64,000 bases of DNA, taken from assembly GCA_047495785.1 (NCBI GenBank), contig JBLDXI010000031.1, positions 1,550,001-1,614,000 on the forward strand, in the 5' to 3' direction. This DNA comes from Lepidodermella squamata (Eukaryota; Animalia; Gastrotricha). The notes under the pieces were generated by a model. The model made no database searches. It saw only the letters and a program-made list of their open reading frames with translations, and was not told where the DNA came from. Each line of letters starts with the position of its first letter. Within the stretch, counting starts at the first letter, position 1. The translations under genes and the position numbers were made by a program. This document shows positions 14,535-20,691 of the stretch, piece by piece.

Positions 14535-16355
14535 TCAAATTTTTGGAACTTTTCTGTTAGCGTAATACTTATCATTTTCCCGCCCCGTGACATTGCGGAG
14601 CCAGTCTTCGAGAGCATTAGGCATGTGGCTTGATACCATAGAATTGCAAGCTGTGTCCGACTCGATCGCATTTTCTGGAAATCGGAATATTATACAAGTT
14701 CTGGCTTCGATATGCTTTGTTAGAAAATTACTCAGTATGCTAGCGAAACCAGCCAGTCTAATCAGCAAGGAATGATTGTCGTTGAGACCAGCCGTGAATA
14801 TAAAACTATCGGGTGATTCCATGAAGACGCCAGCCGCGAACAGAATCGGCCAATCTGAGACTCCGACGGTGAGCGGCACTGTTAGCATCGTTTCAATGTC
14901 TATATAAATCGGCGATGTAACCAAGGCGATTCGGCTGTGCTTCGCATTCAGCAGTGTTATCTGGGCAGCATATTCTACAAATAATAAACGCTACATATCA
15001 GGGTTATTAATTAACTAGAAGTTAAGAAGCTTCAGTGTCAATTAACTTAATGGAAAGGTTCCATACCGAACCTGCGATGGATTTTGAATTCGCCCCTGTC
15101 CTCGTATACCTTATATTAAAATGAACGAACTGAACTAAACTCACCGATAGGTCCTAAGCGGCGCGAGTAGGTATGCGTCAACGAAAGGAAGTAGTCACCC
15201 TGGTAATGAACAAATGGCGAGCCACCGCGTAGAAACAACGACGCTGTATCAGCCTGCTCATCGCTACCAATAACAAACGAACAATCGACAATCCTTGCTT
15301 CGTCATTGCGATGCGGCTTGAAATCACACTCGAAAACGCGCAAGTTCGGCAGGAATTCGTAGACCATACGCAAGCGGCCATTGTAGACCCAGGGTGGCCA
15401 ATTTTTCGCCTGCTGTCCCAATTTCAGCTTGTGGCTAACTTTGATCGTGTACAACACGTTATCGTCCCATGTCCATAGGAACGGACGCCTAGTTATAAAT
15501 GCGATATTAATTATAGATTATAAAATTGAACAAATTAAATGGATCCAACAAATAATTGAATCAGTTGGGAAATCTTCCATTTTCAACTTTTATGATCTCT
15601 TAGAATAGGTATTGAATCAAGCCCTGATACAGCATGATTTAATAGCGAACTCACCTGAGGAATTGCTTCTTCTTGTAATAGTTATGAAAATTCGTGATAG
15701 ACATAATCACAGTTCCGTTGAACTCGAAGATTCTCGCATCTTCAGGTCCGGTAAACGATGGCGATCTCATAGGGGCGGGAATGCCGAAAATATATCCCGA
15801 TTTAGGAACAACTTGTAGATTCTTATCAATTTTAATGGAATAAAGATAGCTATCTTGAAACCGCTGCTGTCGGCCGAGGCGGGTCGCCACACGAACAGCA
15901 CATCGAAGAACGCCTTGGTACGGAATGCAGGAGGCCTGCATCGGAAACGGCCCTTCGCCCGACAGCCCTTTTTCGGCAGCTCGAACGTGTTCGGCGAACA
16001 TGGTTCGTACGTGGCTGTTGACAGTTTGCTTGAAATCGAATAGAATCGATGTGGTAACTTGAGCTGAAGACTCGCCAACGTTGCTGCAAGTTTTACCGTT
16101 AACGTGAGCGCCGCTCAAGTTGAAGCTGAAATGGCGATCACCCTTCACCGTAATTGTGAAGTATTTACTAGTCAGCTCGTTTGAGCCAGTCGCCGATTTA
16201 TTAGAATCAGCCTTGACTGGATTAATTGCTGCAATTTTCAGTAAAAAAGTTCCGTATTGTGGCGGTAGAAACAGCAGTGTCATACATGCCAAGACGACGA
16301 GGAGGAAAAACAAGGAAAACAGTAATTCGCGTCGCCTTTCGAGTAGCAAGGCCAT
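14535..16355 (-). CDS. Bmt/GT91-like glycosyltransferase copy B; exons 16355-15655, 15488-15145, 14974-14732, 14674-14535
   Basis: N-terminal TM anchor; GPEDARIFEFNG, KNWPPW, LRGGSPF, FAAG...AGLNDN motifs; conserved GT-AG introns. Confidence 0.8.
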
Positions 16356-16699
16356 ATTTCTAGACGTGACAAATTCATTGAAAGTGGTTTGTTTACACTG
16401 CAAATGATTAAAAAGAGATCTGAAAGGCTTTGAAATTCGAATCAATCAATCAATCGAGAATGAAACAGCATTTTTCACGTCTAGAAGGACAACAAATCAC
16501 GAAAAAGGTTAATTCAAAAGCACGCGTTTCGTTCCAAATTCCGGATGATTTTTTTCTTGAAAAGAGAAGATCGATGAATGAGTAATAAGTGCAATGTAGT
16601 ATGAAATGAAATGATGACGTTTACGCTGATTTTATGTGTGACTTTCACGTTTCAACTTTTAAGTTTCACGGGTGCACAACTGGCTGCAAAAGCAGTAGA

Positions 16700-16764
16700 C
16701 GACGCTGATGTGACTCGAACCCACAATCTTCGGATCCGAAGTCCGACGCGATAGCCACAACGCC
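16700..16764 (-). pseudogene. tRNA-Arg(TCG) pseudogene with D-arm deletion
   Basis: Acceptor stem, anticodon arm TCGGA-CTTCGGA-TCCGA and GGTTCGAGTC retained; D arm short by ~8 nt. Confidence 0.7.
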
Positions 16765-16864
16765 CGTTAGTTTCAGAGCCTGGTAAGAAAGAGTGCATGA
16801 TAAATAACCGACATTTCAGTTGATCAGTTGACAATAAAATTAAAGCAACTACAAAAATATTAGT

Positions 16865-16933
16865 CGTCGCCAGTACGCGCGGAGACCGCATCTGATTTCT
16901 AGTCAGACCCCTTAACCACTCGGGCATAGCGAC
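16865..16933 (-). pseudogene. tRNA-Ser(AGA) pseudogene with T-arm deletion
   Basis: GTCGCTATGCCCGAGTGGTTAAGGGG, anticodon loop CTAGAAA, long variable arm and acceptor stem present; GGTTCGAATCC missing. Confidence 0.72.
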
Positions 16934-17645: not shown

Positions 17646-17686
17646 AGGTCCCGCCGAGTCGTGCTAAACCACTACACCACAGAACC
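17646..17686 (-). pseudogene. tRNA remnant, Gln-like; anticodon and T loop deleted
   Basis: GGTTCTGTGGTGTAGTGGTTTAGCAC joined directly to CTCGGCGGGACCT; acceptor stem still pairs. Confidence 0.55.
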
Positions 17687-17854
17687 GTGCTCGCAGTGAG
17701 AGTTGCTCTGCGTCTGTTTGACATTAGACAACTTCGTGACTTTTAGCAGCTGAGAGTAACATTTTAGTGCTGGCCTTCGATGACAGCAACCGGAAAGAGG
17801 CATCGTAATTCACGCGTTTGAGAATTTTGTTTATTTATTTGAAAGCAAATAAGC

Positions 17855-17917
17855 GTAGTAGTCGAGTGGTTATGATTTCTCACCGTGGCGGCCTGGGTTC
17901 GATTCCCGGTCAGGAAA
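17855..17917 (+). pseudogene. tRNA-Glu(CTC) pseudogene
   Basis: GTCGAGTGGTTATGATT..TCTCACCG..GGCCTGGGTTCGATTCCCGGTCAGGAAA; 5' strand of the anticodon stem deleted and 5' end degraded. Confidence 0.6.
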
Positions 17918-18244
17918 CACTACTTTTGCACTGCTGCACGAACCCCACCGCTGCAATAAACATAATAAACCTTTTTTGGCATCCAGCAGGTCTTTAAGCA
18001 CAGCAGCAGTTGAAATTTCCTAGGGACTCATCCGCTGTCAAACTTGTTGTTAGATTGATCATTGAACCTAATACGCGGAAGCAATTTCAACAAGTGTCGA
18101 AGCTGAAAAGATGCTAAGCATGTTTTACTGCGGTAAATATGACGATCGCAACCAGGAATAAATTCAACAGCCAAAGTTCTGTTTGAGAAACCTTTCATTA
18201 GATCACAGACAACAGAAAACGATGTTTCAACAGTAACATCATCA

Positions 18245-20691
18245 TTAAACTTTGGGCACATTTTTGTCTTTGAAATATCTGTCGTTTTCCCGAGCTGTGA
18301 CTTTCCTCAGCCAATCTTCAATAGCGTTAGGCATATCGCTCGCTACGTTCGAACTGCAAGCTGCGTCAGACTCGATGGAGTTTCCTGAAATAACAATATA
18401 GATTTTGGCTTTTTACGCTTTTTGCACTGGAAAATTACTCAGTATGCCCTCGAAACCAGCCAGTCTTATCATTAAGGAATGATTGTCGTTGAGACCAGCA
18501 GTGAAAACCAAACTGTCATGTGATTCCATGAAAATTCCCGCGGCGAACAGAACCGGCCTGTCCACGTTACCTGGAGTGAGCGGCACACTTACCATGGTCG
18601 TGATGTCTATGAATATCGGCGATGTGACTAATGCTATTCGGTTGAACTTGGCATTGATCAATGTTAGCTGAGCAGCATATTCTGCTACAAAATTGAAACA
18701 AAATTGAAACAAAATTGAAGATTGAGTTGGATTAATTCCAAATTTGGAAAGTAATTGGATAGCCTATAATAGCATACACTGCTGTTTTTAGCTGTTGCTG
18801 TTAGGACTTCAAATTTGCTACATAACTCTAATACGCAAAGGCTTCAAATGAGCCCTAAGTTACCTTACCATGTGGACCTAAACGGCGTGAATATGTATGC
18901 GTGACTGAGAGGTAGTAGTCACCCTGGTAATGAACAAATGGCGATCCACCGCGAAGGAACAAAGGCCCCATATCCGCCTCCTCGCTACCGATAACGAACG
19001 AACAATCGACGATCCGCGCTTCGGCATTGCGATACGGCTCAAATTCACATTCCATAACGCGTAAATTAGGCAGCAATTCGTAAACCAGGCGCAGTCGGCC
19101 ATTGTGGACCCAGGGTGGCCAGTTTTTAGCCAACGATGTGAGCTTCAGCTTTTTACCTACTTTTATTGAGTATAGTACATTATCGTCCAGAGCCCATAAA
19201 AACGGACGCCTATGAAAACAAAATTAAATTAAAACAGTATAGTTTGGTAGCGGCTTATAAATTAAATGACATTTTATATTCGTCATGCGTGCGGCCAATA
19301 GTCCTATGTCCATCCAAAATCGAAAATGAGATTTTTACAGTTTCTGACTCGGTTTTTCATGCTCGTCAATAATCTGGAACTCGCCAGTTATCGAAAGTCC
19401 TATGTCCACTTTCGTGTTTTTTTTCGAGGTCGTTCCTTTGCGCGGATAAAAATCCTATGTTATGCTATGTTATATGTATGAAAATTGCATCAAAAATCAT
19501 ATCTCGGGCAAAAAATCACTCAATCACGAGCTAAATGGTGATGTAAAAATTGCCAAAGAGTAGACGCATGCACGAGAAATCGAACCACAGCAGTGCGATT
19601 TCGATGCCAAGGGAAAAATAATCCTCTTTGCTTACGCTAAAAAATAAAATAGCTTAAGAATGGATGCGTGCACGAGGAATCGAACTGCAACCTAACAAAA
19701 ACCATGAACCAGAATACAAAAACGCAAGAAAAAGTCCTATCTCTAACGCATGTCTCAATAGCGCGATAGCGATGCAACATTCGATTCGCCGTATAAATCG
19801 TAATTGACTACCCCTAGATTTGCTTCGGTGACAAATTGTACTGAAAATTTTGAAAGTAGTTCAAGCTGATTTTTCGATTTATCTCAATATAATCTCGATT
19901 ATTTTAAATCTCGAGATAGAGGACATACCGACTATTGGCCACACGCACGGCGAAATATAGCTCTGATATGCAAGCGGAATATATCCAAACCCACACCATT
20001 ACCTTAAGAATTGGCCGTCGTAGTTATGAGCATTTGTGATGGCCAAAAACGCTGTCCCATTTAGCTCCAAGATTCTCGCATCTTCCGGCCCAGTGAACTT
20101 GGGCTCTCTGATAGAGCTGGGAATGCCGATGTAATAACCGGATTTTGGTACAACTTGCATACTCTTGTCTAGTTTCAGCGAGTAGATAATGCTGTCCTGG
20201 TATCGATGCTGCCCCTGAAGGCGGTTCGCAACGCGGACTGCGCATCGAATAACTCCTTGATACGGCATGCAAGCGGTTGACATCGGGAACGGGCATTCGC
20301 CTGTGAGCCCTTTTTCCGAGGCCCGAACGTGGTCGGGGAACATGTTTCGGACATGGCTGACAACCGTTTCCTTGAAATCGAACAAAATTGCAGTGGTCAC
20401 GTTAGCTGATGACTCGCTGACTTTGCCGCATGATGCCCGGTCAACAAATGCACCGCTCATCCGGAAGCTGAAATGGCGATCGCCTTTAACCGCAATGACG
20501 GCTCTATTGTTGGCATTTGCTTTAGTTGAGCTCGGTAGTGAATTGCTCAATGCAGCTTTAATTTGGTTGTTCGCGGAAATGTTCTGGAAAACATGTCCGA
20601 ATTGTGTTGATAGAAATAGCAGCGTCAAGCCAGAGGTAACGATGAGTAGTAAGCATAACATTTCCTGCCGACATCGTAGTCGTGATATCAT
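18245..20691 (-). CDS. Bmt/GT91-like glycosyltransferase copy C; exons 20691-20003, 19209-18869, 18681-18439, 18384-18245
   Basis: TM anchor; GPEDARILELNG, KNWPPW, LRGGSPF; same intron positions as paralogues. Confidence 0.8.
19278..19957. mobile_element. Degenerate TIR element in intron 1 of copy C
   Basis: ttcgtcatgcgtgcggccaatagtcctatgtc at the left end matches the reverse complement of gacataccgactattggccacacgcacggcgaa at the right end. Confidence 0.5.

Follow-up and report, generated by a model that had tools for sequence, protein, structure and literature searches.

A tandem family of beta-mannosyltransferase-like genes in the gastrotrich Lepidodermella squamata and its place in the BMT/GH130/GT108 propeller superfamily

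Gene models and array layout

The stretch of DNA analysed here (the window) comprises 64,000 nucleotides (nt) from the gastrotrich Lepidodermella squamata (assembly GCA_047495785.1, contig JBLDXI010000031.1, positions 1,550,001 to 1,614,000 of the forward strand); coordinates below are counted from its first letter. It carries a tandem family of genes resembling the fungal beta-mannosyltransferases (BMT; Pfam family PF12141, glycosyltransferase family GT91), and the family is a divergent animal branch of the propeller superfamily that unites BMT with the families GH130 and GT108. The region 14535-20691 contains two such genes, A and B, both complete, on the minus strand and composed of four exons each. 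When the exon peptides were searched against the window with tblastn, seven minus-strand paralogues and the detached tail of one of them were found. With pairwise E-values of 1e-40 to 1e-107 between copies, chance cannot account for the repetition. The members of the array are listed below, with product lengths in amino acids (aa).

14535-16355, minus strand: gene A, intact, four exons, about 475 aa; open reading frames (ORFs) and splice sites read from the sequence
16355-15655, 15488-15145, 14974-14732 and 14674-14535 (including the stop codon), minus strand: exons 1, 2, 3 and 4 of gene A, separated by introns of 166, 170 and 57 nt, all three GT-AG
About 15675-15770, minus strand: end of exon 1 of gene A, with the GPEDAR motif and the conserved NGT sequon; the Glu and Asp of GPEDAR are candidates for the +1-subsite residue and the catalytic acid
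18245-20691, minus strand: gene B, intact, four exons, about 470 aa
20691-20003, 19209-18869, 18681-18439 and 18384-18245, minus strand: exons 1, 2, 3 and 4 of gene B, separated by introns of about 793, 187 and 54 nt
About 9497-11410, minus strand: copy c1, four exons as in the other copies, with a premature stop
About 35633-41476, minus strand: copy c4, broken in exon 3 by a transposon
35955-39724, no strand assigned: non-autonomous DNA transposon in c4, with perfect 32-nt terminal inverted repeats (TIRs; 35955-35986 and 39693-39724)
About 55144-57571, minus strand: copy c5, intact, about 458 aa
About 58722-60348, minus strand: copy c6, intact, about 466 aa
About 61609-63370, minus strand: copy c7, intact, about 466 aa

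An earlier reading of the letters alone (the sequence-only reading) had proposed seven copies with three common intron positions. Both tblastn and the reading of splice sites confirmed this, and the count of seven stands, but two of the copies are broken, c1 by its premature stop and c4 by the transposon that splits it. The five intact copies predict products of 458-475 aa when counted exon by exon. The three introns lie in homologous codons in all seven copies, in phases 2, 1 and 1 and with GT-AG ends: the first follows ...FL/R, the second ...RRLGPx and the third ...GFxxIL. The third is only 50-60 nt long in six copies and 248 nt in c1. That this short segment might be coding was considered and ruled out by its length in c1 and by gene B, where an in-frame stop inside the 54-nt intron means that it must be spliced out.

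In c1 codon 45 (11278-11276) is an in-frame stop; it lies after the membrane anchor and ahead of the catalytic domain, and this copy is probably a young pseudogene. Exon 3 of c4 is interrupted after ...VPLSVPPE by the 3770-bp insertion at 35955-39724, and the remainder of exon 3 together with exon 4 is found at 35954-35633. The inserted transposon is young and contains internal tandem repeats of approximately 370 nt (38214-39111). On alignment to c5 the flanks of c4 overlap by 2 nt at the breakpoints, which fits a probable TA target-site duplication.

Conserved motifs

The ordered motifs singled out by the sequence-only reading, from GPEDAR to AG.ND, were found in every one of the seven copies. 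Exon 1 ends with GPEDAR in all of them; exon 2 carries KNW(S/P)PW, LRGG(S/T)PF and then TH(T/S), and exon 3 carries LF.AG and AGLNDN. The most conserved part of the protein is exon 2, with a mean column identity of 82% among the copies; in gene A this exon encodes KNWPPW, LRGGSPF and THTY as well as two conserved Cys. The family also has a conserved Cys pair, and a conserved N-x-S/T sequon follows just after GPEDxR in the copies and in their nearest relatives.

Every copy begins with a basic tail followed by a hydrophobic segment. The predicted topology is type II: a short, basic tail in the cytosol, a single membrane-spanning helix and a variable stem of 40-60 aa. Such a lumenal type II layout is that of the fungal Bmt proteins and unlike that of the cytosolic GH130 and GT108 enzymes.

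Assignment to a family by sequence

A profile was built from the exon-2 peptides of the seven copies and scored against 1.84 billion representative proteins. It returned 46 proteins at E ≤ 1e-3 (best 99.6 bits), none of which is close enough to be this genome's own product. PF12141 was the best or only Pfam match in 19 of the 20 relatives that were scanned, the exception being P0002, which has only a weak GH130 match. Eight of these 19 exceed the PF12141 cutoff of 28.3 with 30-61 bits (top 60.9); they are P0001, P0006, P0009, P0010, P0013, P0014, P0016 and P0017, with E-values of 1e-23 to 9e-7 against the exon-2 profile. When that profile was aligned by hhalign with the seven above-cutoff relatives other than P0001, a probability of 99.4% and an E-value of 1e-21 were obtained; the comparison is partly circular, in that the same profile had found those relatives, but the score is very strong nonetheless. 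The look-alikes in the ESM Atlas are BMT, GH130 and DUF1861 clusters. For PF04041 (GH130) no match was found in the window exons, and the relatives reached at most 17.1 bits against a cutoff of 26.

Searches of the Protein Data Bank (PDB) by sequence gave no significant match with exon 2 or with the exon-2 profile; with the family profile the best match was the GH130 enzyme 7FIP, at an E-value of only 0.11. No sequence similarity between the window family and GT108 was detectable by profile search. Word searches gave no match with exon 1 of gene A (264 aa), only Owenia paralogues with the Owenia protein P0021 and, among the matches listed for the 55-row alignment A2, P0003 itself and one unrelated protein.

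Fold and active site

The protein folded was P0003 (454 aa; identity to the window exons 31-41%), which among the relatives of nearly full length is the closest, using an alignment that carried the window exons as separate rows. The AlphaFold model is a five-bladed propeller with a mean predicted local distance difference test (pLDDT) score of 85.3 and a predicted template modelling (pTM) score of 0.83. All of the top approximately 35 PDB matches found with Foldseek are GH130 or GT108 proteins, and the propeller anticipated by the sequence-only reading was thus borne out in this relative. Structural alignment with VIA-align gave Z scores of 18.6-23.1 over 264-308 residues for GH130 and GT108, at most 17.3 for other five-bladed propellers and approximately 15.5 for GH43. 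The nearest structure in the Atlas represents a mostly annelid cluster of 461 aa (template modelling score 0.75, root-mean-square deviation 2.7 over 370 residues). Modelled by itself, exon 1 of gene A (pLDDT 78) shows the order of helix and strands seen in the P0003 model, with an N-terminal helix at residues 2-28 (pLDDT 88-97).

The GH130 enzymes RaMP1 (5AY9), BfMGP (3WAS), Teth514_1789 (7FIP) and BT3780 (5A7V) are the best structural matches to P0003, with Z scores of 20-23 over 270-308 residues at a sequence identity of only 8-14%. The Leishmania GT108 proteins MTP1, MTP2 and MTP4 (6Q4W, 6Q4X and 6Q50) are likewise five-bladed propellers and match it with Z scores of 18.6-19.2. The Glu-Asp of the E-D-P-R motif of GH130 aligns with that of the window family, the family profile placing GPeDpR on GVEDPR of the beta-1,2-mannobiose phosphorylase 7FIP. 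In GH130 this Asp is the proton donor and the residue before it is Glu in beta-1,2 and beta-1,3 enzymes and Tyr in beta-1,4 enzymes (PMC7660257). The Glu-Asp of GPEDAR falls on this proton-donor site. Judged only by sequence order, R322 and H340 (P0003 numbering) are candidates for the phosphate-binding Arg/His pair, which is R168/H231 in Uhgb_MP. Taken together, the profile comparisons and the modelled fold place the family in the BMT/GH130/GT108 superfamily, with its fold, at a high level of confidence.

Proposed function

The best explanation of these data is that the array encodes a tandem family of Golgi-lumenal inverting beta-glycosyltransferases, probably mannosyltransferases; we consider this likely. 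That the proteins are transferases and not hydrolases is favoured somewhat less firmly, and mannose as the sugar, together with the type of linkage, is put forward only tentatively. For the donor, linkage and acceptor of the window enzymes we infer the following scheme. In the Golgi lumen the enzyme would take an alpha-linked sugar donor, most probably guanosine diphosphate mannose (GDP-mannose, GDP-Man), and would add beta-linked mannose to a glycan acceptor with inversion. Acid/base catalysis would fall to the Asp of GPEDAR, the Glu before it would shape the +1 site as in the GH130 enzymes specific for beta-1,2 or beta-1,3 linkages, and LRGG and THTY would supply a conserved Arg and a His, respectively, that hold the donor phosphate.

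Each of the known groups shares some of these properties. The fungal Bmt proteins (PF12141/GT91) have the type II membrane layout and the ordered motifs GPED.R, (E)KNW.P and LRGG.PF in common with the window proteins. The latter differ in being shorter (about 470 aa versus 654 aa for the Beta-mannosyltransferase 2 cluster of the Atlas) and in the Ala of GPEDAR, the animal host, the three introns and exon scores below the Pfam cutoff. GT91 had no solved structure as of PMC8476585. The GH130 phosphorylases are soluble, cytosolic and phosphate-using, unlike the predicted membrane-anchored window proteins, and the Leishmania GT108 proteins are also cytosolic and without a membrane anchor. The latter are GDP-Man-dependent beta-1,2-mannosyltransferases, so the propeller fold is capable of true transfer, and some GH130 enzymes, like GT108, can use GDP-Man as a donor (PMC12814180).

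Several points weigh against the transferase assignment. Exon 2 of gene A scores 13.8 bits against PF12141 (E 0.023), below the cutoff of 28.3; in the exon-by-exon scan only two of the seven exon-2 peptides matched it at E ≤ 1, exons 1 and 3 had no match, and none of the window's own pieces reached the cutoff of any Pfam family. Direct membership of the window proteins in BMT is therefore unproven, and their placement in the wider propeller group, as proposed by the sequence-only reading, is carried by the Pfam matches of the relatives, by hhalign and by fold Z scores of 18.6-23.1. The propeller was seen in the model of the relative P0003 and not of a window protein, and the model of exon 1 of gene A had no Foldseek match at E < 0.001, only weak rows of GH43 type, a propeller that is only partial being uninformative in such a search. 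Active-site assignments beyond the Glu-Asp rest on order along the sequence. The gene models come from genomic DNA (ORFs and splice sites), so splicing and expression are predicted; of the words sampled, 30% are present in one sequencing run guessed to be RNA and 58% in a DNA run, and neither is evidence of expression. Finally, Golgi import of GDP-mannose is not known from animals, and the donor may differ.

The proteins could instead be lumenal or secreted beta-mannoside hydrolases, like the signal-peptide-bearing beta-1,2-mannosidases of GH130, which would trim or digest beta-mannosides such as fungal mannan. The fold scores of GH130 are equal to or higher than those of the GT108 transferases, the conserved acidic residues D407 and D417 could act as a general base and, within GH130, it is the hydrolases that enter the secretory pathway (PMC7660257). 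Set against this, the sequence profiles favour BMT over GH130 in 19 of 20 relatives, and no alignment gives a base residue equivalent to E227 of BT3780. The uncleaved N-terminal anchor with a stem is, moreover, the usual layout of Golgi transferases. We consider hydrolysis to be an improbable function for the family, and a Golgi-lumenal transferase remains the preferred assignment.

Distribution and origin

The family has a sparse and patchy distribution among animals, yet it is not confined to this genome. Named animal homologues were found in the species below.

Owenia fusiformis (annelid): CAH1784812, CAH1774295 and CAH1774147; several paralogues, some in tandem
Lineus longissimus (nemertean): XP_064652479 and XP_064622464
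Tubulanus polymorphus (nemertean): XP_074647660
Saccoglossus kowalevskii (hemichordate): XP_002737754; in this species a model of 2849 aa has seven matching stretches

These homologues belong to the same family, with lengths of 453-567 aa and lineage-specific tandem expansions, but they are only approximately 22-37% identical to the window exons and are placed in other clades. The homologues examined in Owenia and Tubulanus are single-exon, intronless genes. The chytrid-like fungus Sorochytrium is also among the named relatives. The family is unstudied in animals. The sequence-only reading had placed it outside the usual metazoan toolkit; within the literature searched, no report of GT91/BMT-like genes in animals was found, and to that extent the view holds, but, with homologues in an annelid, two nemerteans and a hemichordate, the family is not special to this genome. 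As a separate observation, in Tubulanus polymorphus (OZ123229.1, locus L004, 4932-7010) the gene adjoining the BMT-like homologue encodes a domain of chorismate mutase type II (PF01817), an unusual feature in an animal.

In a tree of the exon-2 region the seven window copies form one clade with a support of 100/99. Their nearest neighbours are the unlabelled proteins P0001-P0005 (90/91), and the named animals group elsewhere, in clades that have each expanded separately. The backbone is not resolved. P0001, P0003/P0050 and P0005 all come from the metagenome ERZ23486787 (loci L001, L005 and L006), where they are carried by contigs from a compact eukaryotic genome with a GC content of 0.37-0.40. 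The genes next to these relatives look animal-like (BRWD1-like and Virilizer), and their paralogues differ in which of introns 2 and 3 of the window genes they retain.

The introns common to all of the copies place the expansion after intron acquisition, and the family has expanded within this lineage. This upholds one half of the earlier proposal, that any horizontal acquisition was domesticated before the expansion. As to the other half, the occurrence of homologues in Owenia, Lineus, Tubulanus and Saccoglossus means that horizontal transfer is neither shown nor excluded, and the tree, with its unresolved backbone, does not settle it. The origin may lie in old inheritance with many losses or in one or more gene transfers.

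A narrower proposal is that a fungus or protist recently passed the family horizontally to this lineage only, where it then expanded. The family is absent from model animals, just 46 relatives were found in 1.84e9 proteins, the chytrid-like Sorochytrium lies in a neighbouring clade and the Owenia and Tubulanus homologues are single-exon genes, all of which would fit such an event. Against it stand homologues in at least three other animal phyla, synonymous divergence (dS) of up to 2.3 among the copies and three spliceosomal introns in every copy. In addition, the most closely related genes carry introns and belong to another small eukaryote, where the genes next to them look animal-like, and no donor clade is resolved in the tree. 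A recent transfer confined to this lineage is thus very doubtful.

Selection and age of the copies

Ratios of nonsynonymous to synonymous divergence (dN/dS), calculated exon-wise by the Nei-Gojobori method and summed, were 0.12-0.29 over all 21 pairs of copies. The dS values were 0.6-2.3 except for the pair c4/c5, where dS was 0.17; c5 is a recent duplicate of c4. Such dN/dS ratios at such divergence mean that the copies are old and constrained. The family is accordingly an old one under purifying selection, with one recent segmental duplication and two recent casualties, c1 and c4.

These data bear on the notion that the propeller has lost catalysis and now serves as a carbohydrate-binding or structural membrane protein. 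The Ala that replaces Pro in GPEDAR speaks for it, nearly all relatives having GPEDPR. The Glu-Asp pair is, however, retained in seven of seven copies, and the remaining polar residues conserved family-wide are kept as well. Of the positions that the family as a whole conserves, the five intact copies have preserved nearly all, namely an Arg, KNW.P, two Cys, LRGG.P, a His and two Asp. In P0003 numbering those retained are R154, G206, P207, D209, R211, K264, N265, W266, P268, C292, C300, R322, G323, G324, H340, D407 and D417. Purifying selection, moreover, is strongest on exon 2, where the conserved motifs lie. Loss of catalysis therefore appears most improbable.

Genomic neighbourhood

The features listed below lie between or beside the copies.

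16700-17566, minus strand: five tRNA genes in a cluster that separates gene A from gene B and is outside the family, with Ile-AAT, Trp-CCA and Pro-AGG (ARAGORN) and two more (Rfam)
25572-26198, 32724-33155 and 52989-53534, plus strand: three paralogous GT32-type genes (PF04488) with a DXD motif
29413-31262 and 49249-51572, minus strand: duplicated multi-exon membrane-protein family with an N-terminal hydrophobic segment
43276-46064, plus strand: reverse-transcriptase ORFs of a retrotransposon without long terminal repeats (non-LTR; RVT_1, E 1e-31), between two duplicated units
4614-5681, minus strand: SABATH-type carboxyl methyltransferase dependent on S-adenosylmethionine, a single ORF (PF03492, E 6e-37)
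2350-4527, plus strand, and 13917-14294, minus strand: arrestin-domain genes
6857-9022, plus strand: receptor-like gene, a single ORF of 721 aa

Genes connected with glycans are abundant in the window. The GT32-type genes are interleaved with the BMT-like copies, and the two that were scanned matched Gly_transf_sug (PF04488) at E-values of 2e-16 and 2e-17. Fungal members of the GT32-type family include the Och1-type mannosyltransferases. The duplicated membrane-protein genes at 29413-31262 and 49249-51572 had no Pfam match; by eye they contain GGSTS and DNALND, which are reminiscent of SGNH esterases/acyltransferases. A unit consisting of one of these genes, a GT32-type gene and a BMT-like gene has been segmentally duplicated in the window. 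The SABATH-type family is best known from plants, and its presence in an animal genome is unusual.

The receptor-like gene, whose product combines an ANF ligand-binding domain with a C-terminal half that is hydrophobic, is, like the arrestin-domain genes, an animal-type neighbour. That the contig derives from a contaminating organism other than an animal, to which the absence of the genome's own proteins from the protein libraries might point, is hardly credible in view of the arrestin-domain genes, the ANF-domain receptor, the non-LTR reverse transcriptase, the TIR transposon, the uniform GC content of 0.39-0.47 and the DNA run that contains 58% of the sampled words.

Significance

It is conceivable, although we think it unlikely, that the BMT-like genes, the three GT32-type genes and the interleaved membrane-protein family are parts of a fungal-style Golgi mannan pathway in an animal. 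If so, such a pathway would make beta-mannose-capped glycans and would require a supply of GDP-mannose in the Golgi, which is not known from animals.

Enzymes of the propeller fold are known to carry out beta-1,2-mannosylation in yeast cell walls, where the modification influences recognition by the immune system, and in the mannogen of Leishmania. To our knowledge, this modification is not counted among the glycosylation pathways of animals. The coexistence of intron-bearing and intronless homologues makes the family a useful case for separating old patchy inheritance from gene transfer. An old, selected, multi-copy family with divergent homologues suggests that beta-mannosides so far overlooked are made, or trimmed, by some marine animals; the family provides a tractable set of enzymes with which animal beta-mannosides can be tested for, and it raises the question of how the donor would be supplied to the Golgi.

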